DNA from: Asterias rubens
Taxonomy: Eukaryota
Assembly: GCF_902459465.1 (NCBI RefSeq)
Contig: NC_047074.1
Coordinates: forward strand, 12,958,001 to 13,022,000
DNA: 64,000 bases
Reading direction: 5' to 3'
The notes beneath the pieces were generated by a model. It was not told the DNA's origin, did no database searches, and was given only the letters and a program-made list of their open reading frames with translations. Every line of letters starts with the position of its first letter. The first letter of the stretch is position 1. The position numbers were made by a program, and so were the translations under genes. Shown here one piece after another: positions 1 through 24,300 of this stretch.

Positions 1-163
1 TAATGATACATGACATAACAAATCTGTGAAACTTAGTGATCAAGTGATCATCGAACTTACAAGTTAACAATAAGAAAACAAAAGAACAAAAAACACCCGT
101 GCTGTATAACATTGTTTGCCCTGAGATAAATTGATTTGAATTTTCTTTTCCATTTTCTGTCAG

Positions 164-342
164 GTAGTCGGGATGAAACCCAAGAGGCCCTCGGCCTTCC
201 ACAGCCCAAAATCGGCTCTGGATCACCCTTCAAGAATTTCACTCTTCGGAACCTGAAGATAAGCTCCATCTTAGCATTTGCCCGCAAGCTCCATCTGGAG
301 GATACAGCAGACGAACTGCTTAAAGTTGTCAAGACGATAGTC
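164..342 (+). CDS. Giant gene exon 1/96 (first visible)
   Basis: cag|GT..GTC|gtaagt; SRDETQEALGLPQPK..LLKVVKTIV. Confidence 0.8.
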
Positions 343-3300
343 GTAAGTTTAACTGGAAACAAAATGAAAATATAAAAGTTACTCCTATTGTTATGACCCT
401 TCCATGTTTTTTTTAATCAAACAAACCACAAAAATCCTCTATAAACATGTTTGATATAAAAAGACCCTAAAGGTCTAATGATTCAACACACATTATCAAG
501 GCTGTAATAGTTGTTTAATCAATTTGCAAGTCGGATAAATATTTATTTGGTTTTCCATTAATTAGAAACTTGTGAGCGACAAGCCGTGTGTTCTTCCCGA
601 GTCTATGACCAACGATGCTTTAAGGATTGAGCTTCAACAGAGAGGTCTGAGCTCACAAGGAGAGAGGAAGATGCTCCTCAAGCGATACAAAGAACCCGAA
701 GACCGTAAATGTTTATGACTTTCAAATTGAACAGAAGTGATAACAGGACACTTATATCCTTTGAGCGGAAGAGAACATGGACCTTGGGGCTGGGATATAT
801 CCGTCTGTTATCACCCTAACTAACATTTGATCTTCATTTTTGTTTTTTTATTTTTTTGTTTTACAAGACTTATACATATTTGTTTTTAAATGCACCAGAC
901 CCTATACACAATACACCAAATAAACAAGAACTTTTAGTTTTTCTTTAAAACATTTTGTTTATAATTGAGATGAATTCAAAACAGTGTGAACCGTGAAAAA
1001 AAGGAGTAATTTTTGTACCGCCGAGTTATGGCTTGATACTATCTTAAGTGGTTAGCGTGCACAATAGAACAATCCTTAATTATGTGTTTAAGTGAAACAA
1101 CACTCTTTTTTCACCCCGCCACAGGTTGTCCTCTACTTCAGGTCTCCCTACCTAAGAATGTATACTGTAAGATTGATGAGAGCTGCCTGGGTGTAGAATG
1201 TTGTATGAACATTAAACTCTTCATGGTGTCTCTGGCTTTCAAGGCATTCATGAGATTTGATCCCAGTGAGTTTCAGTTCATCATTGGTGTCAACTCGTGG
1301 AACTACACTGTTCAAATCCTGACGGCAGAGTGGGGTAAGTGGGAGTAATGGACCTGTTATATGCACGTGACGTCATTTTAAAAGTGCGTCCTCGTCAGGA
1401 TTCGGCTGAAGCCCTGAGCACTAACGCGAAACACACACGCAATTGTCAAAGTGTTGTGTTGAAAGAAATCATTTAACAATATTACAGTTTTTGCATTTAT
1501 TTTACTTTTTGACCCAAAGTGTTGATGTTTTTTTTTTTACCGAAAAGGTATTTATGAATGGGAATCAAAGTGTGTTGAATCGGTTTTCAACCAGTGGTTT
1601 TAACCCGCCGAGGCCTGGTTCCTGATAATTTACCTCGACTTCGTCTCGGTAAAATTATCAAGAACCAGGCCTCGTTGGGATTAAACCACTAGTTGAAAAT
1701 CTCTTCACAACACATTGATTCCCTTATTAATATTAAGCTTGTGAACTTTGACAAAGCTTCGACTTGATAACGTAGCTTTGAAATTGCTAACAGCTCTTTC
1801 TAAAAGTGTGACTGCATTTTCTGCAGGTACCAAGTCTCACCATAGAACAGTGTTAATTTTGTATTTGGTGATTATTCAGGGAAACAATGGGAGGTTCCAG
1901 TCCCCTTTGATGTACCTTTTGTTGATGACATGAAACTTCATCTTAGGTAAGTATTTCTCGTAAAGTTAAATATGGTAAATGATTCAGCATAATAATAAAA
2001 GCTGTGTTAAACTTAAAGGAGCACGTTGCCTTGGATCGGTCGAGTTGGTCTTTGAAAAGCGTTTGTAACCGTTTGTTATAAAATGCATATGATTAGAAAG
2101 ATATTTTAAAAAGGACAATATAATGATCCACACAAGTATCACTCGAAATTGCGTGGTTTTCCTTTTACCTCGTCGACTAATACGGTCGGCCATTTATGGG
2201 AGTCAAATTTTGAATGGCCGACCTTGTTAGTTCGCAAAGTTAAAGGAAAACCACGCAATTCCGAGGCAAATTTGTGTGGAACTTTCTACTTTTAAATCAC
2301 CTTTCTAACCATATGCATTTTACAAACGGTTACAAACGCTTTTCAAAGACCAACTCGACCGATTCAATGCAACGTGTTCCTTTAAGCTATTTTTGATTGT
2401 ACTGACTGTAAGTGACGTGGCCTTGCCTCTAAAATCTCGTATGTTTTGCACCAGAAACGAGTTTTGCACACTATACATGAATAGCAATTTTTCATTGTAA
2501 TCAATTGAAGGTTCAGCGTTGAAAAGACAAGAACTCAACTTCTTGTCAGCATGAGCGTGGGTTTCTGCCCTGAGAGTGGGGACGCAGAGTGCCTGGAATT
2601 CCTCGATGTGCTTCAAGATTCCGCTGTACCACTTCCCATCTACAACCCTGATGGCACATTCACTTGGCCAGAAAGTAGGTCACATTAAATCATGATTCTA
2701 ATACACTCTCGAACGTTTGTCTCAGTGGTGTAAAGCATTTATGAAACTGTTGCTGTTTGAACGAAACAATAGGCCTAGTTGTGAGATACATTTCGTAAAA
2801 TAGTATGAATTGAACCCATAGGAGAGATGCAAGCTTTCTTAAACTCATCTCACATCTCTTCAAGACGATATCCCCTTTCTCAAGGGTTGACTTTCAGTAA
2901 GTCGAGAAAATTTACTCTCAAATGAAACATAGTTGCAGGATATTTTCGAAAATAGTATTGTATCTCGTCCGGAAGATACCACTTTTCCCAATTTCCCTAA
3001 GTAGTTTTCTATTACGCTTTATCTTCTCCAACTCGCCATCGATTTCCGTATTCAGTAATACTGGGACGCGTTGACTTGGGTCGGGTGAGCTGGTCTATGA
3101 AAAGCGTTTGGAAACATTTGTAAAATGCAAATGGATATAAAGTTGTTTTAAAAGTAGAATATAACGATCCACACAAATATGCCTCGAAAATGCACAGCTT
3201 CTTTATGCGTTGTGATCTAACACGGCACGCAAATGTGTAGTATAGAGTCCACACTTTTACACTTCACAAAATGGCCAACCGTGTAGTACGCGAAGTGTCT

Positions 3301-6300
3301 ATTTAACGTGTCCCTTTAACTATTGATAAAACAGAACTGCTGAAGCTGTTTGTTTCTGTAATCCTCTTTTAGTTGACGTCGAGGAGTATTTCAGCCGTGG
3401 CAAGTTGAAGAAGTTTGTCAAAAAAACTGGAGAGGAGTTTCTTCGGGCAGGAACAGATGCAGCGATTGATTATGTTCTGAGAGAGATTGGCTTGGACAGA
3501 GTATGTTTTGTACTGCTTTCATATGTCTTCATAAATTCCTTGTGTTATGGGTTCAGATGTTTTTACCACCCTCAACCCTGCCAATGAAATTTTCTGCTTA
3601 TTTGGGGCAAGAGAATAGTAGAACCTTCATGCATAATCATCATCATCCTTCGTCCTTGGACGGAATAGTAGAATCAGATTTGATGAAGTGGTGTCAGGTT
3701 GCTTTGTCCCTCATTAGTTGTTGGGTCTCGTTTGGACTGAGATTTGTGTATTTGGTGATGGTTCTGTGTAGCTCATTTTCCTCCTGCCGCAGTTTGGATG
3801 TCCGCCAACATTACAGGAACACTTGTGCTTGGTTTTGCCAAATTTGAATAATAGGAAACCTGTGCATCTTTCTTTTCCCCGTTTGTTAAAACAGAAACTT
3901 CTGGATGGAAAAGAACCTCGTCCAACACCAGCCAGTTTGAGCGACCCTCAGCTCATCGGTGCACTTGAAGGCAGGAATCTGAAAACAACAGGAAGTAGAG
4001 CTGAGAAAGAAAATAGGCTCTCTCGGGATGAACGTAGTAAGTTTGAAAAAGATGCAACCTTTCACAAGAGGGTTAATCACTTTTGTTGGTAACAGGTCTT
4101 CATGGGAGAAATTAAAGTTAGGTCAGATGTTTTTTTTTTTTTTTTTTTTTTTTGGGGGGTATACATTTTAACATATTTTTCTCCACGCAGGTTGTGAAAC
4201 ATTTACTCTACCAGCATTCTCCGGAAAGGTCGCCGAGATTGCCTACTGCTCAATCAGTGAGAACTGCCTCCGTATTGACTGCTGTCTAGAACTGAACATC
4301 AAAGTTTTAAAGTTCAAGTTCAGCCGCTCCTTCGAAGCATTCATTGACGTCAATGCGTGTGATTTCTCGATTACAATTGCCTTTCAGCATTTGCGGTACA
4401 CCAAGTTGCTGTTGAGTTACGATTGGGGTGAGTGTTTATAAAAAGTACTGAGTAAAGTAGCTTTAGAGAAAATGTTTAGATTTGGATCAAGTGCAGCCAT
4501 TTTTTCTTTATCAAGAAGATCATCACTGAAGGATGGAACACATTGTTGTGTAACTTGCTCGGTGGCCGGACACAGTCATTGTTATATTAGCTAAAATGAC
4601 AGCAGAGGCAAACAAAAAGAGGTACCAATAGGCCGAGCCATCAGAAGAACTAAATTTTCAAAGTGTAACATTGGTATAATTTGGGTAAGCAATGTTGTTA
4701 TAAAGGATTTGAGGCATTGCATGGTGAGGTATCAATATTTGGTTTGCGGTAACACCATGCGTGTATCTACTTGCCAGGTAGAGTTTGTTCTTAGTCTTTC
4801 TTTAGTCAACTACCGCGGAGTAGATTTATCGGACGTTCGGGAGACTTCTCAGTTCTTGCTCTAGCTTGCTGTAGTCATCGTCAGGTGACTAAAGCTAGCT
4901 AGTCGAAACGTTGAGACCAATTCAGAAACTGACTCAGTGACAGTGCATGTAATTACAATCCTTTAAAGATGCTATGTCAGATTTTTGGCCGATTTGACCC
5001 CAAAATGTTGATTTTAAATTCAAAAGGTATTTTGTTGGGGGTCGAGAAAGTTACAAGCTTTCATTTGAGCGATTGCTCGAAAAAGTCCGCCAATCATTAG
5101 TGAAATAAAGTGCTCAAAATTAGTTTTTGTCGAGATCCCGACAATATATCACATGACCAATTCTTATGTGTTTTATAAGAAACGTTGTAAATTTGTTTCA
5201 TGGTTCCTGACCATTAAAAGTTAAAGGTTAAACTTGTTTCGTAAGAGCGGGTGATACTCTTTGAAATACCATTCACTCAAAAAAAAAACCCTGTTTTTTT
5301 ATAGTTTGGGGCCAAAACTCTGACATAGCATCTTTAACCTAAAGTAGTAGAGAGAATTGATATAAGTACATACAGGGGCATTGCTTGGTAACATACAGCA
5401 CAGGATAGATTGAGATGGAGAAGTGATAAAGAGGCTTTCCTCCTGCAGTGGAGTGAAACAGAATAGACGATGAGTAGTCCCAGCCAATTTTGTATTCCTT
5501 CCGCCCGGGTACTAGTCACAAAGCAGGACAGTTCGTTTGAGAAGCCTCCCGAACATCTGATAAATCTACTCCGCGTTTTCTTTTTTAATATAATAAAGAA
5601 AAACAGTTCGCTAGGAACACACTCTACCTGGCAAGTAGATACACATTTAGGGTGCTACCGCAAAACCAAAAATTAATATACAATGATATTGTGTTTTCTT
5701 TCAGGCGATGTGAAGCAACAGCAGATCGGACCATTTACACTGAGATACACAATCGATAAACTGGATGATGCAAAGCAGCTCAAGATTGACTTCGGAGCAT
5801 CGGTTTGCCCCATCAACGGGGAGGAGTGCATCTTTGACATTGACATCATTCAGGACTACAGAGTGCCGATTCCATTCTGCAACTCCGACTTTTCACTTTC
5901 TCTGCCAGGTATGCATATAACTTTAATTATGGCATTATTGGTAAGGGTTCCCTACTTAATAAAAGTTTAACATTGTACCATGAGTTAAGAACCGAGTTTT
6001 AGGCGAAACAATGAAACCGTAAAATCCTAATAAATAAGTACCTGCAAACAAAATTTGCTATAAATCTAAATTCAAACACAAAAAAACCTTATATAGAATT
6101 ACCAGACTAGTCAAAAGTGAGTTGAAATTAACAACTTTCATATTTGTTTCTTTTTTAATTGATATTGAGCCCAAAAAAATTTCTATCAGGTGCTTACAAT
6201 TGTTTTGATTTTGTGTTTGTTTTGATACGCAGGGAAGAATAGCCTGACTGATTTTATTACTCAAGTTGGTCGAAATGCCGGTCAGCAAGCCATCAACATT

Positions 6301-9300
6301 CTCCTACAGTTTATTGGTCTGAGAGATAAGATTGACGATGGACCCTGTGCCTCCACAACTCAGGATGGTATGAACAAACAATCAAGTTTTCCATTTAAGG
6401 GTGGTTTTAAACACAATGTGCCAATTTTCTACGTAAGTTCACGTATTAGTTATGTATTTGTTTCTTTGGTTTTCTCCTTTTTCAACATTTTGTTCACAGT
6501 TTCCTTTCTATAGTTGAAAAGAAAGTTTAATGGTTCCTGAGCTTATATCTGTGTTCATTGTAAACCTTGCATTTGCATTTACGAATATTTTCAGTATTGC
6601 AACTTGCAATACAACTTATAAATGAATCAAAAAAGTACTTCTTAAATATTATTAGAATTATTTTTTTATAAAATAAAAACATAACGAAAAAATATATAAC
6701 ATAAACAAATAAATACTTTGTTTTGAACCAGTCTCATTCAATACTCGTTATTTTTTCAGTGTGCACTGACGTAACTCTCCCTCGTCTTCCAAGCACATTG
6801 ACCTGTGACCTTTACGATCGCTGCCTCGGTGTGCGATGCTGTGTTGATCTGGATCTTCAAATCACTGTGTTATCAAGTAATGTATGGCTGGAACTTGATC
6901 CATGCGAGTTTTCACTATCCATGGGATTTGGAAAGTGGTCCATAACCTTCAAGATATTCGACTACCACTGGGGTGAGTATTTTGTAGCTAGTCATTATTA
7001 TCAACAGATCAGTACAGGGGTTCTCTTCAGGGGGTTTATGCAAAGTTGAGTTGGGTGCATACAGATGCAAGTTTTGGCAAGGTTTAATTAAAGAGAAACC
7101 ACTCAGAGAAATAATATCAAGTGAACAATACATGACTGACAATTAGAGAGAAAATAACATTGTTGGTAATTTGACCTTGGTATTGCAACTATTTGTATTA
7201 AGACGTGGTTTCTCTATGATACAAATTGACTCAAATAATGCCATTTCGAAACTAAGATGAATGGATAAACAAAGTATATCATTCGTTTATTATTGTTATC
7301 AGGCACCCAAGAGGAGCTAAAGATCGGCAAGGCCTTGACCCTGATTTACACCATCAACAAATTGACCGAAGACAAGGTGTTTGTGTTGGACCTGGCTCTG
7401 TCTCTTTGTCTTCCCGATTCGAGTTGTGATATAGCGCCCTCTATTGACATCTTGAAAGGAACGCGTGTACCTATTCCGTTATGCAATGAGAACGCAACAT
7501 TCGCCCTTCCAGGTATGCAAATAAAGAGATGAATAGGTTTTTTAAGCTTAACTGTGAAATTGTTCCGCCCCAACTTGAGCTGCAGTCTCTACATAATTGG
7601 GATATCCCTCAGACTTCAGACCAATCAAAATAAACCCAGCTACGGTAGCTTTTAGTCACTGCATTTATCCAATGATTTCATTGTATCCAATGGATTCACT
7701 GGATCTGAGGTTCAGGCACCTGCCTTTATCCTTGCGGTTAAAGACAGGGGCCCAGTATACATAAGGGTATGATTCAGCTAGTGAGGATCAACCTAAGATA
7801 TGGTAAACTGGTTCTTCAAACTTGGAATCTCTGTTAAGAAAATCTTAACACTTTGTGTTAATATTGATAATACATGTATTGTAGTTTATGCAAAAATAGA
7901 AGACAAAAAACACTTCAGTAAAAGATTAAACAACAGGCTCGTTAAAATGGAAATGTTGTCCATTTTTGTTTTACCATCACTAGGTCGTTTCGCACTATGA
8001 TCACGAGGGTCTACATACTAGATGTGACTCAGAATGTTTCATCATCCTTAGCAAAGACAATTTTTATATCTTCATAGGATATGAAGACACCGGACACTAC
8101 TGGTTTTTGTCAAAGACTAGTCTCCATAGTTGCTGTATCTCAACATAGGCATAAAATAACAAACCTGTGAAAATTTGAGTTCAGTTGATCGTCGAAGTTG
8201 CAAGATATTAATGAAAGAAAAAACACCCTTGTCGCACCATGGTCACACGAAGTTGTGTGCATTCAGATACTTTATGATTTCAAGACCTCAAATTCTAAAT
8301 CTAAGGTCTCGAAATCAAATTCGTGAAAAATTACTTCTTTCTCGAAAACTACGTAACTTCAGAGCGAGCTGTTTCTCACAATGTTTTATACTATCAACCT
8401 CTCCCCATTACTCGTAATCAAGAAAGATTTTATGGTAATAATTAATTTGAGTAATTACCAATAGTGTCCTCTGACTTTAAAGACACTGGAAACTGTTAGT
8501 AACCCTTCAAAATAGTTGTTCGCTCTATAAAAGTTTGTTCTGGGTTTAATGATGCATATATCAAATGTAAACAGGTGATGGGACTGTGTCAGACTTCGTG
8601 AAGATGATGGGACAGAATGTAGCCGAGTCGGGTATCGATGCTGTGCTCACCGCTCTTGGCCTGTCAGTAAGTAAACCAGACTAAATGGTACAAGGAGACA
8701 ATTTCCGTAGAAAAAATTTAATACCTTGTTATTTCAATTCATTTTCAATTCAATTCAATTCAATTCATTAAGGTTTATTAAAAAAAATCACAAAATACAC
8801 GACAGAAGTTAAAAAGACTTAAATTGGCGTGTTTACATTCATTACTGTCAACAATGACAATAAACAAAAAAAAAACTGACTTAAAAGAAGAGAAGAAACG
8901 CTCCAGGCATGAATGCACAAAAAAGATAAAAATTGGACTAAACTTGGTAAACATTCGATAAAACTGATAATTCATTATTATTAAAAATTACACAAGACAA
9001 CAAACTCTGACTTAACAAGGAGAAGAAACTGAAGGCATGAATGCACAAATTTAAAAAATTTGATCAAATTTGATAAACATTTGATAAAACTTAACCCAAC
9101 TGTTAGAGATACTTGTTGATCAAGCCACAAATTGTGTAACTTTCAATTCAATTAGAATAATTTTAGTGTCAAGTAAAAAGACAACAAGAACAATTATTTA
9201 CATATCTAAACATTGATGGAAGCTCCAAAACAGCTAAGAAAAAAACCCAGTTAAAATGGTAGAAATAGATTTACACCAACAATTTCACAGCGAGAAAAAC

Positions 9301-12300
9301 AAATATGTAATGAGTATTTTAAAATAACCGTCACAAATAAATAAAGGCCTTCAAACTTTATAACAATCTAAACAAACTGAAGTTCAACCAAACCAAACCA
9401 GCAAAGACAGTTTAACCATTTAACTGACATATTACTCCGCCCATATCGCTGCATTGACCCCATTTCCATTGATTAGAACAAACAATTTAAATCTTATTGG
9501 AATGCAGAGTAAGCTCATACATCTCGTTTTCACGTACTATTTATTTGTAGAAGTTCATTGGTCAGGAGCCATGTGTTCGCCCGCAGGTCACACAGAATGG
9601 ATGGCATAAAGGTAGGTTTGTGGAAAGTGAAAAGAGTCACCTTTAACGTTGATTTAAGATTCAAGTAAAATGGAAGCAAATTTTCTTAATTTTACACATG
9701 GTTTTGTTCACAAGTTGTAGATTTGGGATATCATCTACTAAACCTCATTACATTTCTGCAGTTTGTCCTAGAGATGTCAGACTTCCACATTTACCAAGAC
9801 ACCTCATCTGCACTCTTCCAGAGAAGTGCATGGGGTTCGATTGCTGTTTCGAGCTTCCAATTCCTGGACTGACCCCAATCAGCACCAATGTCTCCTTCAT
9901 ATTTGATCCTTGTAACTATAAGTTGTCACTCTGTCTGGGAAGCTGGAGTAAAGACCTACACATCCTCTCCTATCAGTGGGGTCAACAAGAAGAGGTCACC
10001 ATTGGCAAGGCAGTGTCTTTCAGGTAATCAGTGTAGAAATAACGAAAGATATTTAAATGTTTCAGATATTAGTTTTTATTTGCTTACAATCAAACGTTAA
10101 TTTGGTCCAATTTCCTCACAGTCTAACCATTGACAAGGTCGAGGAATCCTTCCAGATCAACTTGGATATGACCTTCTGCCTGGACGGTGACTGCACTCCA
10201 ATCCCGATCCTCAGTGATGCCATCATCCCCATACCATTCTGTAATCCCAATGCCACCTTTGAGCTTCCTGGTGATGGAAGCTTTGCTGCACTAGCAAAGG
10301 ACCTCGGAGGCAACGTCGGCGAGTTGGCGATCCAGGCTGGTCTACGTAAACTTGGAATTCAGGTTGGTGAATTAAATCAATGGACAGTGCTAACACAGTA
10401 CTTTCCCAAGCTCTGTCAAAAACGAATCACAGGCATATTACTTTGGTGGGATTGAAACCTAAGTCAATTTGTGTTTTGGTTGGACGTGGTGTCCGCATTT
10501 TGTTTTGGGGACGACGGTAGTCCTCAATACTATTGGTAATTGTCAAAGACTAGCCTTCACAGTTAGTGTATCTCAACATATACATAACATAACAAACCTG
10601 TGAAAATTTGAGCTCAATCGGTCATCGAGATTGCGAGATAATAATGAAATAAAAAAACACCCTGTCACAAAAAGTTGTGTGCGTTTAGATGGTTGATTTC
10701 GAGACCTCAAGTTCTAAATCTTTGGTCTCAAAATCAAGTTCGTGGAAAATTACTTCTTTCTCGAAAACTATGGCACTTCAGAGGGAGCCGTTTTTCACAA
10801 TGTATTGTACTATCAACCTCTCCCCATTACTCGTCACCAAGAAAGGTTTTATGCTAATAATTATTTTGAGTAACTACCAATAGTGGCCACTGCCTTTAAG
10901 CTGTGGCATAAATCAAGCTTAGTTTGTTATGTTTAGGCTATAATGTGTCCGAGTATAACGCATTTTATCGAAAAAGCGATGAAATTCTTTATACTCGGCA
11001 TATTACTCCCTGTTGGTGTTAGCTCGCATGAGTCACGGGGAGACTTGTTATCCAGTCTAGGTTTTTCCCTATTAACACGATGCCATGTCGTGTGTGTGGT
11101 ATTATGTATGGTAGTGTTGGGTATTCAGCAACCAATGGGAGCGTTGCTTATATAAGTTTGTGTTGGTTTGGTTTACATGGTTGACTTATTAGGATTGGTG
11201 TTGCAATTGAGTGGCTGAACGTTTGGCGGGAGCATAATTATTGTCACTTTGTCACAGCTCAATTTTGGAGTAACCGAGATTGCCTGGTAGCTAGGGGTAA
11301 TTCGAATTCTATATTTAGCAGCGGGTACCGCAACTTAACTAAACTCAAAACTTATCTTAAGCAGCTTACCAAATTGTTTTGAAATTGTCATCAAGTTCGT
11401 CAATTTGTGGAACTGTTTAATCTTCAGGAATTTGCCATTAATCAGCAGTGTGACCTGACGATACTTGCTCGCGCCGAAAACAGTAAGTTATTTTTCTTCT
11501 TGAGATTACAGGTTTCTAAGCGATCATTATAAACAATAACAGTACATGGGCTCTTTTCTTAAGTTTACTCCTTTTATATATTTCCCTCACAACTTAAATA
11601 TTAGGTATTATTTTAATAGGTGTTAAATTTGCATCGGGGATAGGCCCCAAAGAATGTTAATGTTGGTTTTACTCACCGATGTGTGCTAGCACTGCCGTCG
11701 ATTTCACAAAACTCTTCCTAACTTAAGACTATTTACAGGACTTAGGACGAGTCCCAACCCTGCACGGTAGCATGCAGACCTTAAGATTAATCCTAACTCG
11801 AGATAAGACGAGTCCTAACTCTTTGTGAACTCGACCCCTGTATACTTAGTACTTTCCCGAGTTCTTTGAACAAAAACACAGGCATAAACTCGGGTGTGAT
11901 TCGAACCGACGAGCTTTCATGGAGGTATTATTATATAAATAAAGCAATCTTACGTTTTTTCAACTACATCTGATATGTCTAATTCACTTTACTACAAGTT
12001 TATGTAGACACAAAATTTGTTTTCTTCTTAAATTAACAAGCCGTTCCGTCTTTCAACCCAATAGAATGCCCACTGATGAATAAACCACCTTCAACGAACA
12101 TACTGACCTGCACAGTAGACGACCAGTGTCTTGGTATCCATTGCTGCGCCTCCTTGGATCTTATCTTCACTCGACTATCTACCACAGCTTGGGCCGTTCT
12201 AGACCCTTGCGAATTCGAGCTGTCTGTTGGTTTTGGATCTTGGACTAAAAGCTTGACTCTCTTCGAATATGACTGGGGTGTGGAAAAAACAGTTGACATT

Positions 12301-15300
12301 AGTGATGCTGTTCATTTAGAGTAAGTCAAAACTGCCTAATTAGAGATATTTAGATTTCTCACCTCTCCAAATCGAGTTTTAAGAAAATTCGTCAAACCTA
12401 TGTGTTGTCAAACCCTTCGAAATAGTACCTGCAATTATGATGCGAAACTTTGAGCTGGAATAGCTTCCTCTGAAATTAATAACATTGGCTAGAAGATCAG
12501 CCATGCGGATGACTTTGAGTGCAGATCGTTTGCCAGAAACTAGAAATAAACGGACTGTCTAAAACGTGAGATATTGATCAAACTTTCAGAACTGGCTCTC
12601 ATACTTTGTCATTTTTTTTCTCGTATAAACCAGGTTCACAGTTGACAAGCTGACAGCGCAGAAAGAATTCCTGATCGACCTCTCGGTGTCCCTGTGCATA
12701 GATGGCACCTGCACACCGATCAACCTGTTACAGGGAGCCCATGTACCCATCCCGATCTGTAACACAAATGCTACCTTCTCCCTACCAGGCGACGGTTCAA
12801 TCGCTGGGTACCTGGACACTTTAGCAGGGGAAATAACTGATGTAGCTGTGGACTTGGTGCTTGACACTCTGGGGCTGAAGGTGACTTTAACCACTTTGTA
12901 CAATCATAACTTTGTAATGGGCCAAGAGACATTTATAATACAACAACAATACTAATCAGATTTCAATGCCAACATTCAAACTGTAGAGAAAACATACATT
13001 TATATTTAAATTATTTTCTTTTTATAGAATTTCATACAAACGGACTCATGTGGTCTTCCTCCAGCAACTAGTGATGACGGCAAGTGTTAATGTTTTTTTC
13101 TAAATAAATGACAAACTGTTGCATATTTATAAATCCCATAACTCGTCAGAACAAACTCTTAACCGCATTTTTGAAAGTACATTTTAACACTAAGTGTCAT
13201 CCTTACCAATAAAGCTACGTTCTATCTCCCGAAATCATTAGGTTGTCCAGTTCAGTTTCCCACTGGCCGACCCACAGTTTCCTGCCGTATAAACAGCCAT
13301 TGCACAAGTCTGCACTGCTGTCTCAATTTAGACCTCAAAGTAACCCAGCTCAGCTCTAAGGCTTGGCTGGATATCGACCCTTGTGACTTCAAACTATCAA
13401 TAGGAATGGGGATGTGGTACTTCAACATCTCACTGTTCTCGTATGAGTGGGGGAAGATGGAAAGATTCTCTATTGGACGAGCGATAAATGTGGAGTAAGT
13501 TTGTCAAAATAAGAGGAGTTTGATTATTAATTTTACCAACATCTGTCTTAGAAGCAGAAGCCTTAAAATTTGTTGAACACTAGCAATTGACAAGGAGGAT
13601 TTCCAAAATATAATGCATTTTGTTTTAAGAAATTGGTCAAACAGTGAAGAAAATTAGCCATTTGGTTTTCCACCTGTTTTTGTGACTTAAATGACAGCTT
13701 CACGGTAACGTTCAAAAACAAATTGTCGGGTGATTGGGTCGCAACAACTGTTTTTGTTTTTATAAGAACTGATGTTGGCCGTGTGCCTTAAAACAGTTTG
13801 CCTTTCTTTTTTTTCCTTTTAGAAACGAGGTTTGCTTAATGCTCACTCATTATTACTGAATATTCTCACTGAAATCAGATTTTCCATTGAAAAACTGGAT
13901 GCCTTAAAGGAGTACGAGATCGATCTTGCATTCTCTCTCCAAGTCGATGACGAGACTACGGACTTCCCCCTCATGGAGGCAAAGAGAATCCCTATTCCTA
14001 TCTGTAACAACAACTTCTCCTTGGCTCTACCTGGTGACGGGTCTGTACGGGGATTCTTAGAGGAGCTTGGAGACACTGTGGGACAGTCGGCAATTGATTT
14101 GGTTTTGAGAAAGTTGAATTTATATGTGAGTTAAAACAAACAAATTTGTTACAACTTTCACCATTGTATCAATTCGAACGTTCAGTAAGATGTTTTAAGT
14201 GATTTTACTCTTGATTTTGTTTTTGCTTTCAATTTGCAAATTTTTCCAGGATGTTGTAATTGGGGGATCGTGTGAAATACCATCAGAATCGGCAAACAAT
14301 GCACTAGGTAAAGTTTACTTATTAAGTATAACCAAAGTTAACTACCTTGGTTGAATTGACAAACAAGCACCAATACTATTTTGTTTAACTATTATTTGTT
14401 ATGCAACAAAGAACATTCAAAGACTACAAATAATATCACAATTTTTCATCACTCATCACTCGGTGTTTTCTGACTTTCTATCTCCTGTCCACGATTTCAG
14501 CTTGCCCAATGATCTCCCTCCCCACCTTGGCGAACATCATCCAGTGTTCAATCGATGACCACTGTCTTGGCATTCAGTGCTGTGTAAACTTGAACTTTAT
14601 CATCACCACACTCATGCTCCATGCTAGGATCAAAGTGGACCCATGTCACTTCCAGCTTCATGTGAACTTTGAAAGATGGGAACGTAACTTTACTCTGTTC
14701 AGTTACACTTGGGGAAAAGTGGAAAGGGAACCAATCGGTGATGTTGTGACTTTAAGGTGGGTAGGGACATTTTCATAATCTCTTTTAAATCAGATCACTG
14801 TTACAGTTGAATTAAAGAATGAACTAACAAGTAAATTTCAGTTCAGTTGATACTTTTTATGACATGTTGTCAATTTGTTTTGTAGCTATTCAGTTGATAA
14901 GCTAACGGAGAAGAAGGTATTTTCTGTTACACTTGATGTTGAACTGTGCATTGACAACGCATGCGTGACAACCTCCATCTTGGATCATGTCTGGGTCCCA
15001 ATACCCATCTGTAATATCAACGCTGTTACATTCACCCTGCCAGGTGATGGTACGGTAGCTGGATTTATCAAGGACCTCGGAGGTCGTATTGGAGATTCAG
15101 CAGTTGACTTAGTTCTGGAGAAATATGGATTGAATGTAAGAATACTTTTGCTTTCGTTCATCTCGGTCAAAGTTTCCTTTCCAAGACAGTTACTTCTCCA
15201 AAACCATGATCAAACATTGGGGAAGCAACAAACAAGAAAAGCCCCTCTCTAATATTCGATACAGCTCTGCTGTGCCCTGATCAAGCTACGGCCAGATGCA

Positions 15301-18300
15301 TGTCAAAGTCGTTCTCCATGTTTTGGGTTGAAAATCTATAAAATAAAAGCTGACACAAACATTCTAAATTAAAGAAGTTATCTTCTTGAATACCTCAACA
15401 ACAAAACAATTTAAAAGAGGCGCAACCTCCAAAAGGTGTGGCCTGCTAGCAGGAAATAAAAGCATTTACTGATAACAAATGAATTATTGTTTTAGCAATT
15501 TCTCCAGATTGAACAGTGCGAGAGAGGAACACCGTACACCTTAAAAAGCAGTAAGTGTTCTTCAATATTATACGTATGTTTAATTTCATAATGACTTTTA
15601 AACGTATATTTGGCTTGAAATAACACAATGCGTGTGTGTCTACTTGCCAGGTAAAGTTTGTTCTTTGGAGAACTGTCTTGATATATTCTTCTACGCTGAG
15701 TAGATTTTTTTCGTACTTTTTTTTTTCAGGAGAATTTTTAAAAGTTTTCAATTCGGTTATGAATAGTAAAATCTGTGCAATGCCATTACGCTTTCCTTCT
15801 GAAGGTTGTCCAGGGGTCGACCTCGAACAACTTCCTGATTTCCTCTCATGTTCCCTCACCGAGTCCTGTCTTGGCATTACATGCTGTCTGGAGATGGACT
15901 TTAAGATCGTGACACGTACAGTCAATGCATGGCTCATCTTGGATCCCTGCAACTTCAACCTGTCCATCGGCTTTGGGAACTGGGAGCAAAGTATCACCTT
16001 ATTCCACTATGCTATGGGTGACTACAGGGAGGAAGTTATTAACAGTGTGCTGAGTGTAAGGTAACTTTCACAAAACCTGTATACAATCAAACATGGTTGT
16101 AGACTCTATACTCGGGGAGGGGGATTTTGGACTGTATGGTCAACCCTTGAGTATAAATTGACCTTGGTTTCGAATACAAAAAAATGCTCTCAAAATCAAC
16201 TCCGTCTTCTATTAACAGTTTCGATTTATGTTTCTGCTTGTTTTCTGTTTGAGAAGAACATGTATATTTTCTACAAACACGTGTTTTTTTCTTTATCTTT
16301 AACAAAGGTGGCGTGTCGACAAGTTAACTGTAGAGAAGCAGTTTGAGTTGTATTTACAGCTGGTCTTCTGTTTGGATGGGTCATGTAACACTGTGACTGT
16401 GTTTGAGGGTAGCCGTATTCTGATACCGCTGTGTAACACTGAAGATTCATTTGTTCTTCCCGGTTAGTGTTTTTATTTAATCTGGTGTCAAAGTATAAAG
16501 AACACATTGGCTATAATAAACATAGTTTTACCGTACTACTTTTATCCATTTTGTATAATCTCCACTTGTTAATGTAAGCCTTAAAGGCAGTGGACACTAT
16601 TGGTAACTGTCAAAGACTAGCCTTCACAGTTGGTGTATCTCAACATAAGCATAAAATAACAAACATGTGAAAATTTGAGCTCAATCGGTCAACGAAGTTG
16701 CGAGTTAATAATGAAAGAAAAATAACCATTGTCACACGGAGATGTGTGTGTTTGGATGGTTGGTTTCGAGACCTCAAGTTCTAAACTTGAGGTCTCGAAA
16801 TCAAATTCGTGGAAATTTACTTCTTTCTCGAAAACTATGGCACCTCAGAGGGAGCCGTTTCTCACAATGTTTTATACCATCAACCTCTCGTCACCAAGAA
16901 AGGTTTTATGCCAATAATTATTATGAGTAATTACCAATAGTGTCCACTGCTTTTAAAGATCATGACAATTCAAGATATATTTCTCATGTCCTTTTTATTC
17001 AGGAGATGGCACAGTATCGGGATTTCTTGAATATCTTGGCGGCAATATCGGACAATTTGCTATCGATGCAGCAATCCGACACCTGAATCTAGGCAGCTTC
17101 CTATCAGGGAAGGCATGCTCTAATTACAGACAGGGTATGTTGAGGATTTATGTTAAAATAGAGTTGTATGAGAAATACTTTTAAAGGCACCGGGCACCTT
17201 TGGTAATTGTCAAAGACCAATCTCCTAACTTGGTGTATCTCAACATATGCATAAAATAACAAACCTGTGAAAAAATTTAACTCCATTGGTCGTCAGAGTT
17301 GCGAGAGAATAACGGGAAGACCACCCTTGTCGCACAAGCTGTGTGCTTTCAGATGCTTGATTTCGAAACCTCAACTGAGGTCTCAAATTCAGTTCAGATA
17401 ATTCTTTTAGTTGGAAATTCTTTTTTTATAAGAAACTAAGTTACTTCAGAGGGAGTCTTTTCTTACAATGTAGCATACTATTAACAGCTATCCATTACTC
17501 GTTACCGAATCTAACAATTGTTTTGAGTAATTTCCAATAGTGTCGGTGCCCTTTTAAATCAAAGTAACAGGTGATAATAATTGGTATCAATTAAGACACA
17601 ATTCCCTTTTTTTCAAAAACTAAGTCACAATGTATTTTACTTCCACGTTAATTTTTGTTATAACGATATAATGTGAAGGCATCATAATGATGTGGGAACT
17701 TTTGTTGAATGGAACACATGTTAGATATCCAGTGTTTTTGTAAATTTCCCTATGTGATATTCTCCCCCGAAAAGATGTTTGTTCAAGTGCAACTGGTATC
17801 CTTGGCGACTGCTCAATCGTTGGGGAATTCTGCACAGAGCTCAGATGTTGCCTCGACTTGGATCTGAAGATAGCTGATGTCTCGGCCTCAGCGTGGTTTA
17901 AGTTTGACCCCTGTGACCTCACCTTCACTTTAGGTCTGGAGACTTGGATGTTTCATGGATCGGTCTTTACATATGAGTGGGGTAAGACAATCAAATTATG
18001 ACCATACTTTCAGATTCTATGTTCAACTTTCCCTTTCCAAGCTCTAATGTTTCTAACCAATTACTCTCTGCGCCAACTCTCTTTTCAAAAGGTAGAATAT
18101 ATTACAATACATTGTGTTTTTATCTAATGATTTCGTTGTGTTAATAGGTGGAGAGACAATGGTTTCAATTGCTCCTGGATTGAATCTTAAGTAAGTGTTG
18201 AAAAACTCTCTCTGTTAAAAAGATGCAGTGCTTGAATTTAAAACATCCGTTAGACATTTATTCATGAAAAAAAATGCATGTAATAACCTTTCTTAAAGAT

Positions 18301-21300
18301 ATTTCTCAAAGATCACTCTGGTTGTACATTATGATCTTGTGTCTCTGAGCCAAAAAATACGGACAAACAAATAAGAAACAAACATTGTTTTGTTATTTTT
18401 TTTCAAGTGTTTCTCCAAATTTACATAACCATCTTAATCGCTTTTAATTTTCACAACTTACAGATATTCAATCACCAAACTCGATGAGTCCATGGAGTTG
18501 CAAGTAGACCTGACTCTAGAGTTCTGCGTCGATGAACTTTGTACCGACATCGATATTGTGCAGACCATACCTATCCCACTTTGCAATCAAGACTTCAGCA
18601 GTTATACATTCTCGGGTAAGTTTGTATTCAGTTCACTCAAAAGTCAATTCACAAAATGACAATGAAGTTCATAACAAAATATCTTAAATAGAGCATTTGA
18701 TTGATGTAGTGTAATGTTGTATAAAATGTATTAACCTTGCACTGTCAAACAACCATTCACCAACAAGCTGGAGTTGACGACCTCTGTTTTACTGGACACT
18801 ATTGTTAACAGTTAAAATAAAAACTTACCAAGAAACGAGCACGTGAGCTTGTTCAAATTAACACATTTTCAAGCCAAGCAAGCATTACTGACACTTTAAT
18901 ACAGCACTGTTTTTTTTTACACTTTACAGTTTACAGATTTATTTTCTTTATTCCCAGTTGATGGTTTCCTACAAACAGTGTCCGGACAAATCGTACAGGG
19001 AGTAACTGAGTTACTCTTAAATCAACTAGGCATCGACCCTGACTTCTTCAATGGTGATCCGTGTGTACAACCGAAGAGTATCCAGTCTTACCGAAGTAAT
19101 TTCTCATTGTAACTAACTTTGAAATTAGTTCTAACCAAAAGGACAATTATCAGATGTCCTTCATCTTATTGACAGTTCATGGGTTACTGTTAGGAAAATT
19201 GTAAATACCTTAATTTAGCCTGTATTTATAAAACTTTATCAGCAACGTTAAAAAATGCACGATACGAAAGTATAATCATGAGTAATTCCTGTTTCAGATT
19301 GTCCAAACATGCAGCTTCCTGGTAACCTCGACTCGAGTGTACAATGTGAAATCCTGGAGTCCTGTTTTGGAATAAAGTGCTGTCTTGACGTGAACCTCGG
19401 ACCACTCAATCACAGCTTCAGTGCCTCAATGGTGGTTGACCCTTGCCTTGGTCAGCTGAAGCTGCAGTTTGGTAACTGGAAGTACAGTAAATCACTGTCA
19501 CAGTTGGACATTGGTGTCGATAAGGAGGTCACCATCGGAAACTTTGTATCGCTCATGTAAGATTCTTTATTTTCTTCTTTGCAAAAAAAAGTTGTAAATC
19601 GTAATTTGCTTTTAATTTGTTAAAATCAAGTTATAGAACTTCAACAAATATCTTCATGCCTTTGAAGAAGGTCCGGTTTGTATCGAAAGCTAAGGCCATC
19701 TACCCTACTCATTATAATAAAGCCGCATGTATATATTGTTTTGCTTTATAGATTCAAGTTGGAACTTTTTGATGGTAATATATCATCAAGTCTGTATATG
19801 GATGTATGTGTGGGTGATGTCTGCACGGGTCGAATCGTTCTACTGGATGAATCAATATCTCCACTTCCTCAGTGCTATTCCAATGGATCGATCTCATGGA
19901 GAAAGTTACCGGGTAATTGTGTTCTTATAAAATAATCCCTTCTTCAACAGTGACAGTCAGACAGTATGATTAATAGAAATATTAACAGATGTTAAATTCG
20001 CATCTGGAATAAAGAACATTCACTGTGGTCAAAGCCATATACAACGATGTGTGTTAGCACCGTATACTCAGTACTCTACCGAGCTCTGTGCACAAAATAG
20101 CAGGCATTATCTTGCAATTTTAGAGCATTGTCATACCAACTAGACCACCGAGATTGCCTGGGCCCAAAAATTTGCTTAGCACCACAATTTCTTCCTTGAT
20201 AAAAACAGGATAACCAACCAAATTGTCGTTTGTTGCATATTGCTTGTTACATGTATTCAGCTGTTGTTTGCTTATCCTGAAAATCACGTGGAAATTTTGT
20301 TGGTAATTTTGTTTTTATCAAGGCAACAAATGTCATGCTAAGCAAATTTTTGTGCTAAGCAGCGCTATGAAATTGGGCCCTGGTAGCTATGAAGCAGTTC
20401 AATTCTATGTTTTAGTAGCGGGTTCTGCTGTAGAGATGTTTCTTCAATTCGATGCACGCCCCTAAAACATTATTTATTTTGTATATTTAAGAACTGACTT
20501 CGATTTCACAACTTGGCAATTTTGAAATTGGATTAGACGTTCTTGCGCAAGCTTTGGGACTGCCAACACGTCTACTATCGGATTTGTCATGTGTTGTCTT
20601 TCATACGAGTGGCTTCACAGGTAAGCTTCAAACAACTGTTATGCGATATTTTGGAGAGAAATTAGTTTAAAGGAACACGTTGCCTTGGATCGGACGAGTT
20701 GGTCTTTGAAAACCGTTTGTTATAAAATGCATACGATTAGAAAGATATTTTAAAAGTAGAATATAATGATACACACAAGTATCACTCGAAATTGCGTGGT
20801 TTTCCTTTTACCTCGTCGACTAACACGGTCGGCCATTTATGTGAGTCAAATATTTGACCCTCATAAATGCCCGACCGTGTTAGTTCGCAAAGTAAAAGGA
20901 AAACCGCGCAATTTCGAGGCAAATTTGTGTGGATCATTGTATTGTACTTTTAAAACATCTTTCTAACCATATGCATTTTATAACAAACGGTTACAAACAC
21001 TTTTCAAAGACCAACTCGACCGATCCAAGGCAACGTGTTCCTTTAATAATTATCTTTATTTTATTTATTAATTATTTTGATGTAATGCCACATAGGTTGG
21101 TCAATGTCTCGTTGTTGTTTATATAAAAATAGTTTAAGTATGTACGACTGTATCATAGAGTATACCACAAAAACCTCTTTATTTTGTTCAACCAAATTAT
21201 ATAAGCAGTGGACACTATTGGTAATAATAACTCAAAATATTTAAAAGCATAAAACCTTCCTTGATTACGAGTAACGGGAAGAGGTTAGGAGTATAAAACA

Positions 21301-24300
21301 TTGTGAGAGACGTCTGTGCGGCACCATAATGTAGCCCGAGCCCTAAAGGTTCGGGCTACATCTAGGTACAAGTTTGGGGCTACATTTAGGTCCGGGCTAC
21401 ATTTAGGTACATGTTTGGGGCTACATTTAGGTCCGGGCTAAATTTAGGTACAGGCTAAATTTAGGTACATGTACATAAACAAAAGAGTTATTTTCCAAAG
21501 ATTGATTTTAAAACATCAGATTTAGAATTTGAGTCTCGAAATCAAGCATCTGAAAACACACAACTACTTGTGACAAGGTTTTTTTTCTTTCGTTAATATC
21601 TCGCGACCGATTGAGCTAACATTTTCACAGGTTTGTTATTTTGTGCATATATTGAGATACACCAAGTGAGAAGACTGGTCTTTGACAATTACCAATAGTG
21701 TCCAGTGTCTTTAAGCTCCATGTAATAATATTATGATCGAGCACCCTTTTCCTGATTGCGATGGATTTGTGTATATATTAAACAGGTTGTTCACTGATTA
21801 TAAAAAATACTTGTTACTTCATCAGCACATACACAAATTTTGTGTAGATTGTTAGATGATTGTTATTTTGTATCACCCTTGTTTTTTCGTTCCAGTGTGT
21901 CCCCATCTGCCTGTACTACCCGTTCTTCCATCAGGTGGAGTTTGCCAGTATGCTGATACATGCCTTGGGGTAGAGTGTTGTTTATCAGCAGACATAGGCA
22001 GCACGACTCAGACTTTACGGGCGTGGTTGACTGTAGACCCATGTGAACTGACTGCGAGTGTAGGCTTTGAAAACTGGAGTTTCAATATTACACTCTTAAG
22101 GTGAAGTTTCTGCATAAAAGATGTCACTTTTATCCCTTTCGTCTTAAAAGGTTTACTCTAAACGAAGCTACACACCATGTACAATAATAATTATTTGCAA
22201 CGGCTGCTCACTTTTTATATCTCCTAGGAATAATCTCAAGTTAGGAGTAGTCCCAACTCTTTGTGAACTCCTTGTTTAATTGCTTTTCTTGTAGTTACAA
22301 GTGGGGCAAGCAGATCAGAGAATCACTAAGTGATGTTGTCTCGATTTCATTCACCATTGACAAGACATCAAACAATCGGAACTTTGTGCTGTCACTCTCT
22401 GTTAAATTCTGCATCGCTGAGTTATGTGCTCCTGACATTATCATCTTAGATGGCTTCGTGGCACCGATTCCTTTCTGTAATGCAACGGGGACTCTGGAGT
22501 GGCCTCAGGATCTTGGTGAGTTAAATATGTTCATTCGTCATTCCAAAACGGAAAACATTCTCGAAACTAAATCCGAAGGGATGCATTCATTTTCTTCTAC
22601 AAACACAAGTTAGTTTCTTCCGTATAAACAGACAAACTACAACGTTCGAAATTGTTTAAGCTAGAAAGATTACAATCAGGGTTGGTGATAACACTTTTAA
22701 TGGCAAAACATGAACTTGTTCATCTTTTGTGTTTCCAAGGTGGTAGTGTTACAGATTATGCGAGCAGTCTGGTGGTTAACCGCCTGGGTGTTAGCACAGA
22801 TGTCCTTCTACCTCAGTCATGTAGTGGTCCACCAGAACAGATTACATCTACGATCTCAGGTAAACAATTCCTGCGAAAGACAAACTTGTCACCTTTTTTT
22901 GAAGCTTAAAATGTGGCCCTTTTCTCAGTGATGTTCAAAACAGCCTAAAGCTTAGCATTTAGTCAAGGCACACGACCCCAAATGCCACGCAAAAAATAAC
23001 CGCACTAGTCTTGTTTTCGTGCGTGAGTGCCGCTGCCGCGTGCGCCTTGACTAATATAAAGGCTTCCTCAAGGTTTGCTTTGAAACCAATTTTCAAATAA
23101 ATAAGCCCAACCGATGATTGCTGTTTGTGTTTATCTCAGGTTGTGGTTCGCTCTCCGTTCCGTCCTCCATTGCGTCTTATTGTTCTCTGGATGAATCGTG
23201 TCTCGGGGTTGGTTGCTGCTTGACCCTTGACCTGGACATAGTTCAAAGGTCATTCTCAGTGTGGGTGAAACTCGATGTATGTGCCGGTAGATTCACCTTT
23301 GGTTTTGAGGAATGGAGTCACAGTGAAGTGTTAAACATAGCAACATTGCAAAGTAAGTCAATCTAAATGTCTTTTTATTGCACTCTCAAAAAGATAAATA
23401 CGAATAGTAAACTTGCAGGTACAACTATGTGTAAAATCTCTTTTGTAGGAGTGTTGGCTCTGAAAAAGCCGGTTTGGTCTCGACGTTTCGAACAGTATAC
23501 TCTGCTCGTCTTCGGGAGAAACAAAGTTTGTCCGATTATGGCTAGTAGATAACTCCTTTAGCAAACACAATATAATTAATCACGTTAACTTTATGTTATG
23601 CGGGAAAAAATGCCAAGATCAAAGAACAACAAATTAAACAGAAAAGAAAACAAGAAAGTGTCAATAATCTCCCCGAGTAGGCCTTTTGCAGAAATATTCT
23701 AACTTATTTTGTTTTTATTTGCTTTATTTGAAGCATATTCCCAGGAGAAAAATATCGGAAACGTTAAAATCAGGTAGGTGATATTTTCTCGAAATAAAAA
23801 GGACCGTAAATAAATCTAATTTTAATTTCACTGTTTTTTGTTTGTTTAAGAATAATAGGCCTACTACTATATATCGAAGTCACCAAACATTCTATTGCTT
23901 TTTGGTTGCTTTCTCTAGATATAATATAGAGCGCCCCCATGAGTCCGTCTATGATGTTGACCTTGACCTCGCTGTGTGCTGGCAAGGGAGATGCACTGAT
24001 CCCATTGTGGTTCTTCAAGACACGTTGTTCTCTGCTTCACAATGTGGCCAGGAAGGAAGCAGTAGCAGGAGGAGGAGAAGAAGTGTTGACGATCTGTACG
24101 TTCAAAATACCGTTTACCTGCTGCAGCTAGACGGACTGTACATTTGGAAACATTTTTGTTTTGTTGAGATGCAATATAGAGCGCCCCCATGAGTCCATCT
24201 GTGACGTTCAAAATATCTTTGTAATGGTTGTGGCTAAGTTTGTTGATTCGAGTATAAGGTTTTCAAGTATTACCGAGTTGCATATGTCGCTCAATTCTAA

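Follow-up and report, generated by a model that had tools for sequence, protein, structure and literature searches.

SAP domains are regarded as characteristic of nuclear proteins that act on chromatin or in RNA processing. Here, we describe two SAP segments, SAP1 and SAP2, encoded in a 64,000-nucleotide stretch of the Asterias rubens genome (NCBI RefSeq assembly GCF_902459465.1, contig NC_047074.1, positions 12,958,001 to 13,022,000 of the forward strand; this whole stretch is hereafter called the window, and positions are counted from its first letter). An earlier note, made from the bare letters, had taken them for nucleic-acid-binding motifs inside an apparently extracellular protein. The motif L..L..EL..RGL...G.R..L..RL, the invariant loop Gly, the hydrophobic pattern and the helix–extended loop–helix fold are common to these segments and to the nuclear SAPs of Tho1/SARNP, HNRNPUL1, MKL1, PIAS1, Ku70, ERI1/3'hExo and DEK. 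The surroundings differ: here, the SAPs lie in the ectodomain of a predicted type I membrane protein, outside the usual nuclear or cytosolic context, and a PAN domain is encoded by the same gene; a conserved Cys pair brackets a loop of exactly 39 residues; and the SAPs form a fixed tandem pair, with one β module between them, joined to a lipid-transfer-protein head. Taken jointly, the SAP identity, the ectodomain topology and the antiquity of the pair are, in our estimate, very probable at the least.

A SAP-type fold in a secretory-pathway protein that also bears a lipid-binding domain has a parallel in the C-terminal domain of MANF/CDNF; MANF, which is resident in the endoplasmic reticulum (ER) and secreted, pairs a saposin-like lipid-binding domain with a SAP-like domain (PMC6198132). 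The MANF domain, however, is merely SAP-like, carries a CXXC motif, and belongs to a small soluble protein with an ER-retention signal, whereas the loops described here are canonical SAP sequences, free of CXXC, in a protein of ~7,500 amino acids. The large lipid transfer proteins (LLTPs; vitellogenin, apoB, apolipophorin II/I and MTP) resemble the orthologues of the window's gene in opening with a signal peptide followed by a Vitellogenin_N domain. Unlike in LLTPs, DUF1943, DUF1944 and VWD were not detected in these orthologues, in which the head is followed by the SAPs, 12 Cys-rich modules, a PAN domain, fn3-like/cadherin-like repeats and a transmembrane anchor. We know of no described LLTP with a SAP–Cys module–PAN–fn3–cadherin–transmembrane architecture, and the literature searches brought up none. 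For the Cys-rich module, the best matches in AlphaFold DB after the family members themselves are mostly DUF4773 proteins, which are small, secreted, Cys-rich and found in invertebrates, at template modelling (TM) scores of 0.3–0.47; the module differs from them in having no Pfam sequence match, in the TM score below 0.5, and in being repeated 11–14 times in one chain. Literature searches returned no paper on this protein family or on an extracellular SAP. Some members carry the automatic UniProt names 'SAP domain-containing protein' or 'Vitellogenin domain-containing protein'; the bare SAP hit is already in the databases, and what is new is the topology, the loop between the Cys residues, the fixed pairing and the conserved exon structure.

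Both peptides quoted in the earlier note are present on the + strand, SMTNDALRIELQQRGLSSQGERKMLLKRY at 602–688 and SLSDPQLIGALEGRNLKTTGSRAEKENRL at 3934–4020, and each occupies, as had been claimed, an exon of its own that runs from phase 0 to phase 1 and follows an exon for a helical segment. Exon borders were established by following the reading phase across AG/GT splice sites, together with assembled RNA contigs from four public runs that were aligned to positions 100–6000 (5901 letters). The exons in this part of the gene are as follows.

164–342, + strand: exon for the helical tail segment of the module preceding SAP1; ends in phase 0; AG/GTAAGT splice sites; RNA contigs X1, X3 and X5.
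566–704, + strand: SAP1 exon, 139 nt, phase 0 to 1; encodes KLVSDKPC-VLPESMTNDALRIELQQRGLSSQGERKMLLKRYKEPED.
1125–1334, + strand: first ('A') exon of Cys-rich module 1; RNA contigs, splice-phase tracking and orthologue loop geometry.
1880–1946, + strand: small exon of module 1, phase 1 to 2; matches a 61-nt gap in RNA contig X3 record 6; tblastn.
2511–2674, + strand: exon of module 1, phase 2 to 1; RNA contigs.
3373–3500, + strand: exon for the helical tail segment of module 1, directly 5' of the SAP2 exon; phase 1 to 0; RNA contigs X1 and X4.
3895–4036, + strand: SAP2 exon, 142 nt, phase 0 to 1; encodes KLLDGKEPRPTPASLSDPQLIGALEGRNLKTTGSRAEKENRLSRDER; RNA contigs and orthology.
4191–4427, + strand: 'A' exon of module 2; RNA contigs and phase tracking; its Cys codon at 4193–4195 would close the SAP2 loop.
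5705–5908, + strand: second exon of module 2; RNA contigs and phase tracking.

Two independent RNA contigs (X3 record 6, 2186 nt; X5 record 16, 2301 nt) connect 164–342, 566–704, 1125–1338, 2509–2674, 3896–4023 and 4191–4426 in that order; X5 record 16 covers the SAP2 exon as 3896–4011 (X3 record 6: 3896–4023), and X3 record 6 extends further, to 5704–5909. In a third contig, X1 record 4, 3920–4036 is spliced to 4191–4333. Because these contigs splice the SAP exons to their neighbours, both exons are present in processed RNA, and the placement of exons 2 and 7 in the mature mRNA holds. The lengths of 139 and 142 nt are not divisible by 3, so that skipping of either exon singly would break the frame. 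The helical-tail exon at 164–342 is 72–79% identical to the Acanthaster planci proteins P0156 (LOC110985344) and P0158.

The Pfam SAP model (PF02037, HeH/LEM clan) has a gathering score of 23.9 bits, and the comparison with it that the earlier note had proposed came out in favour of the first motif and short of the mark for the second. SAP1 scores 28.8 bits (E 9.3e-7; model positions 3–34 of 37; match span 599–694), above the gathering score, and SAP2 scores 19.7 bits (E 6.7e-4; match span 3934–4005), below it, over model positions 4–27 only. The A. planci orthologue P0156 reaches 41 bits over two stretches, SAP1 included, and when the 39 homologous SAP segments gathered from family members (alignment A2) were scanned singly, 35 matched Pfam SAP at E ≤ 0.01. 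Protein-language-model features place the SAP1 exon adjoining SAP clusters (0.89, 183 shared features) and the SAP2 exon near them more weakly (0.85, a lead only). Searched against solved structures, the A2 profile retrieved Tho1 (E 6.5e-7), MKL1 (1.3e-5) and HNRNPUL1 (3.4e-4), and also pTAC3, a SAP protein of plastids. This required the family profile, as a single-sequence phmmer search of PDB sequences with the SAP1 exon gave noise only; a strict SAP regular expression likewise had no match in the first 26 homologues, although an iterated local hidden Markov model (HMM) did find the segments.

The A2 consensus reads KPC..P...T..QL..EL..RGL.TTG.R..L..RL...D..C. Its most uniform columns are L24 (39/39), G33 (38/39) and L20 (37/39), and surface positions are kept as well: T/S16 in 37, R/K41 in 35 (90%), R27 in 31 (79%), R/K35 in 29 (74%) and Q19 in 28 of the 39 segments. 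An AlphaFold2 model of the window's SAP1 exon, built with A2, places helices at 16–25 and 34–42 with an extended loop between them, at a core predicted local distance difference test (pLDDT) score of 92. Modeling of A. planci residues 1334–1617 (mean pLDDT 84.5) returned SAP1, a nine-strand all-β module, two low-confidence helices and SAP2, with both SAPs at pLDDT 89–97 and the SAP2 helices at 249–258 and 267–280. In a Foldseek search of the PDB, the top of the list for the SAP1 model consisted mostly of SAP domains (ERI1/3'hExo, HNRNPUL1, HCC-1/SARNP, Tho1, MKL1, DEK, FAN1, PIAS1 and Ku70); the best-fitting of these superpose with root mean square deviations of 0.5–0.8 Å over ~31 residues at a Foldseek probability of up to 0.98, the E-values being poor owing to the tiny size of the domain. 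VIA-align gave Z 4–6 for the same SAP structures. The predicted helix-loop-helix, with SAP structures leading both comparisons, thus bears out the fold that had been proposed, and the Pfam scores, the 35 of 39 family segments and the fold prediction together put the SAP motifs well beyond chance. On its sequence and its model, SAP1 qualifies as a bona fide SAP domain. The window's SAP2 is a SAP domain by its orthology to the SAP2 segments of other species that score above threshold, but appears degenerate here.

MANF/CDNF C-terminal domains (2kve, 8qaj) were also among the structural matches, which raises the alternative that the SAPs serve as protein–protein docking sites in the secretory pathway or at the cell surface, for instance for an ER chaperone or lipidation factor while this very large protein is made. 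By analogy, the pairing of a saposin-like lipid-binding domain with a SAP-like domain in MANF (PMC6198132) would correspond to the lipid-transfer head and SAPs here. The MANF matches are weak, however (Foldseek probability 0.16–0.20, Z 3.3–4.0), and rank far under the nuclear SAPs; the CXXC motif is absent from the 39-residue loops, the sequences of which are canonically SAP rather than MANF-like. We regard docking of this kind as improbable.

The location of the two SAP domains relative to the Cys-rich modules is fixed. The iterated local HMM found exactly two SAP segments in every family member covering the region, ~237 residues apart (1340–1374 and 1577–1611 in A. planci), with Cys-rich module 1 beginning right after SAP1 and module 2 right after SAP2. 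In the orthologues, successive modules are usually joined through Cys-to-Cys loops of 8–19 residues, against 39 residues at the two SAP junctions, in agreement with the short Cys linkers that had been noticed at the later repeats; the length of 39 recurs in 35 of the 37 complete SAP loops, across four phyla. In the window, codon 587–589 encodes the Cys that opens the SAP1 loop, and the Cys that closes it is the first full codon (1127–1129) of the exon at 1125–1334. The modules mostly contain 10 Cys residues, an even number. Judged by this arrangement, each SAP seems to have been inserted into a disulfide loop between modules.

A single + strand gene fills the window and runs past both of its ends (>64 kb). 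The window is colinear with residues 1272–6897 of A. planci P0156, at a mean identity of 68.6% over 79 exon-sized pieces, and its sequence marks the gene as the orthologue of uncharacterised proteins of ~7,400–7,600 amino acids in echinoderms, cephalochordates, molluscs and a nemertean. A profile of module first exons (A1) that was run against 1.84 billion representative proteins gave 720 matches, the top one being a 5183-residue amphioxus protein, from which a word-based search led to uncharacterised proteins of 3,500–7,600 amino acids. Family members were found in Branchiostoma floridae, B. belcheri, B. lanceolatum, Acanthaster planci, Patiria miniata, Mytilus, Mizuhopecten, Lottia, Patella and Lineus longissimus, and a cluster look-up added Potamilus and Sinanodonta. 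No vertebrate or arthropod homologue turned up in these family searches, in which absence was not tested systematically.

Precomputed Pfam matches in the family comprise Vitellogenin_N, SAP, Laminin_G_3, fn3, Big_9 and Cadherin_4/5, with Vitellogenin_N (PF01347) recorded for eight proteins from six species and four phyla. Our Pfam scan of P0156 returned Vitellogenin_N at 61.9 bits and, in the C-terminal half, PAN, fn3, Big_9, Cadherin_4/5 and EGF-like domains. The Vitellogenin_N domain is seen in the orthologues; the window begins at the equivalent of residue ~1272, downstream of it. In full, the orthologues run from a signal peptide through Vitellogenin_N, ~700 residues without assignment, SAP1, a Cys-rich β module and SAP2 to 10–12 more modules (10 in sea stars and in the window; family proteins hold 11–14 in total and sea star proteins 12), a spacer with furin sites and a PAN domain, and from there through many fn3-like and cadherin-like domains and EGF to one transmembrane helix and a cytoplasmic tail of ~270 residues. 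Within the ~700 residues, shortly N-terminal of SAP1, residues 1064–1154 of P0156 show a weak resemblance to Peptidase_M23 (E 5.7e-4, short of the cut-off), and a precomputed 'weak' M23 match is recorded for the Potamilus family member P0011; a degenerate LytM-type barrel may lie between Vitellogenin_N and SAP1.

Full-length models start with a hydrophobic, signal-like segment, after which comes F..F..G.EY.Y, a motif with which lipid transfer proteins typically begin. They contain a single strongly hydrophobic segment ~270 residues from the C-terminus (7274–7302 in A. planci), followed by Lys-Lys, which is present in A. planci, P. miniata, B. floridae, Lineus, Lottia and Patella. The family proteins contain 2.5–2.7% Cys and 38–67 N-glycosylation sequons. 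These features predict a type I membrane protein with an ectodomain of ~7,250 residues, inside which the SAPs reside. Because they are located between the signal peptide and the C-terminal transmembrane helix in the orthologues, which also carry extracellular-type domains, the SAPs would be extracellular, and the earlier wording 'apparently extracellular' is supported.

The runs RRRRRS (24067–24084) and SRKRRD (26780–26797), both of furin type, lie on either side of the spacer that separates the part of the protein built of Cys-rich modules from its fn3-like half. Honey-bee vitellogenin has been proposed to act in the nucleus or elsewhere inside cells after release and uptake of a fragment, and by analogy the SAPs could act on nuclear or intracellular nucleic acid once an N-terminal fragment had been released by proteolysis and taken up; the Vitellogenin_N head of the orthologues and the furin-type sites downstream of the SAPs would fit such a route, and DNA binding by the vitellogenin of honey bees is the subject of a published paper (PMC12432429). 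The furin sites are distant from the SAPs, however, and the SAPs lie within an ectodomain rich in disulfides and glycosylation sequons, and we consider this route very improbable.

For a comparison of exon structure, three loci were used: a paralogue from B. belcheri and one family member each from Potamilus streckersoni and Mytilus edulis. In amphioxus (B. belcheri), exon lengths are 139 nt for SAP1 and 142 nt for SAP2, each exon running from phase 0 to phase 1, and the same lengths and phases are found in the freshwater mussel Potamilus and in the window; the one Mytilus SAP exon examined has 148 nt and the same phases. Because sea star, amphioxus and Potamilus share these lengths and phases, the gene comparison dates the SAP pair, its position and its exon structure to before the protostome–deuterostome split. 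Both SAPs are kept in sea stars, amphioxus, molluscs and a nemertean, which answers the earlier question of conservation among orthologues, and the pair survived lineage-specific duplications in bivalves and amphioxus. A chance helix-loop-helix resemblance, or an artefact such as unused exons or a fused gene model, could point to the sub-threshold Pfam score of the window's SAP2 taken alone and to the empty single-sequence phmmer search of the PDB. Against it stand the above-threshold matches, the RNA support, the exactly two fixed-position copies in four phyla and the identical exon lengths and phases. We give this explanation almost no credence; the Pfam matches, the RNA contigs, the fixed pair and the exon conservation effectively refute it. 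The persistence of a canonical SAP pair for over half a billion years in an extracellular environment, bracketed by a presumed disulfide, suggests that the extracellular use of this fold is old; the locus also draws attention to a previously unstudied, pan-bilaterian family of ~7,500-residue membrane proteins related to vitellogenin and apoB.

The two SAP exons differ in their degree of constraint. SAP1 is 83–85% identical to A. planci, and RNA contigs of related animals differ from it by 2.2% and 2.9%; for SAP2, the identity is 46–51% and the differences are 9.4% and 6.0%. For comparison, the gene averages 68.6% identity to A. planci, and the neighbouring exons differ by 3.6–9.7% in the RNA contigs. 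No other exon in this part of the gene is as well conserved as that of SAP1, a pattern that marks SAP1 as being under strong purifying selection. In the window's SAP2, an Arg codon (CGT, 3919–3921) stands at the loop-opening Cys column, which is Cys in 38 of the 39 segments, and a Lys takes the place of the helix-2 core Leu/Met. SAP2 therefore seems to be relaxing in the window's lineage, provided that the Arg reflects neither an assembly error nor a polymorphism.

Taken together, a model for the SAP pair can be proposed. The flanking Cys pair would close a disulfide that anchors each SAP as a protruding mini-domain where the lipid-transfer head meets the repeat stalk; at this neck, it could present a docking surface for a ligand. 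This ligand would most likely be phosphate-rich or polyanionic, that is, a nucleic acid or the head groups of lipids or glycans. A genuine and ancient ectodomain SAP pair that is disulfide-anchored and docks a ligand is the best overall explanation that we can offer, and we put it slightly below an even chance. Docking of such a ligand is favoured because the basic positions R27, R/K35 and R/K41, typical of nucleic-acid-binding SAPs, are retained, because SAP1 is better conserved than the adjacent globular exons, and because the SAP of Tho1, the nearest solved relative, binds double-stranded DNA (dsDNA; PMC4909252). On these grounds, docking of a polyanion or nucleic acid by the SAPs is a tentative proposal to which we assign roughly one chance in three. 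That the SAP pair forms a putative extracellular nucleic-acid-binding module in the strict sense is unlikely; were it true, the giant protein would serve marine invertebrates as a surface receptor for, or scavenger of, extracellular DNA or RNA, possibly coupling nucleic acid to lipid cargo, and a nucleic-acid-scavenging function would already have existed in the bilaterian ancestor.

Several observations weigh against ligand docking and against parts of the model on which it is built. The SAP loops are near neutral, with net charges of -5 to +4, which lends no support to unspecific polyanion binding, although the net charge of the Tho1 SAP is likewise about +1. The conserved Arg/Lys positions are generic to SAP and may play a structural role. 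The weak conservation of SAP2 in this lineage (46–51%, with the Cys and the core Leu lost) is more in keeping with an element that can be spared than with a binding site that is essential. The disulfide between the loop Cys pair is read from conservation and from the even Cys count (10 per module). The signal peptide and the transmembrane helix were judged by hydropathy only, on orthologues, both gene ends being beyond the window, and the orthologue gene models are automatic predictions.

Much of this evidence would fit a SAP fold that was co-opted as a structural element, namely, a rigid, ligand-free hinge or spacer that is anchored by a disulfide and separates the lipid-transfer head from modules 1 and 2. 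The SAP stands in for an ordinary Cys loop of 8–19 residues, the loop length is fixed at 39 residues, the overall charge is close to zero, extensive change in SAP2 is tolerated in the window's genome, and invariance is highest at core hydrophobic residues and at the Gly of the loop (L24, L20 and G33). Conversely, the surface positions T/S16, Q19, R27, R/K35 and R/K41 are also kept across four phyla, the conservation of SAP1 exceeds that of the flanking globular module exons, and a spacer needs no specific fold held for >500 million years in every paralogue. A spacer without a ligand is, on balance, a doubtful reading, although one to be taken seriously, and we retain the disulfide-anchored docking site as the preferred explanation.

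Downstream of the SAP pair, a tblastn search with the RNA-supported part of the gene located 12 copies of the Cys-rich module between 1.1 and 23.4 kb. The later modules are SAP-free, with short Cys linkers; their first exons and the PAN exon are listed here.

6762–23336, + strand: 'A' exons of ten further Cys-rich modules, beginning with 6762–6971, 9764–9979, 12067–12276, 13244–13450 and 14503–14712.
15807–16016, 17780–17980, 19300–19512, 21898–22098 and 23142–23336, + strand: 'A' exons of the later Cys-rich modules, continued.
34672–34884, + strand: PAN/Apple domain exon of the same gene; Pfam PAN_1 31.8 bits (cut-off 21.4); colinear with P0156.

Pfam searches of the Cys-rich module exons and of the fn3-like exons gave no significant match, and the model spanning SAP1, the module and SAP2 had no real Foldseek match in the PDB (TM ≤ 0.2, with weak lipocalin and sliding-clamp noise). 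Positions 33000–63200 contain ~30 repeats of ~100 amino acids with the motifs D.TPP..G.V.DG and W..F.D.ESGI..Y and weak fn3/Ig-like Pfam scores; by their sequence, these look like a poorly described extracellular repeat family. Within an open reading frame (ORF) at 55803–56363, a 27-nt tandem repeat occupies 55815–56079 (9.8 copies, 98% matches). The ORF is in frame and continuous with the coding piece at 56133–56234 and, if exonic, would lengthen the ectodomain by about ten copies of ADEAADMTT. A run of 141 N at 58053–58193, inside the gene, is an assembly gap or masked sequence.

Repeats are frequent in the introns. At the intronic positions 1479–2463, 3055–3251 and 4631–5418, the contig depth of the RNA runs reaches up to hundreds of thousands, indicating high-copy repeats; the intronic segment 2011–2395 ends in inverted arms of ~100 nt (local alignment score 78), in which it resembles a miniature inverted-repeat transposable element (MITE). 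A dispersed intronic element is found on the + strand at 8160–8414, 10648–10854, 16715–16927, 25344–25628 and 28020–28241 and on the - strand at 24565–24801 and 29057–29254; its translation contains KLCAFRWLISRPQVLNLRSRNQIRGKLLLSRKLWHFRGS, and it is probably a repeat of the MITE type or of the short interspersed nuclear element (SINE) type rather than an exon.

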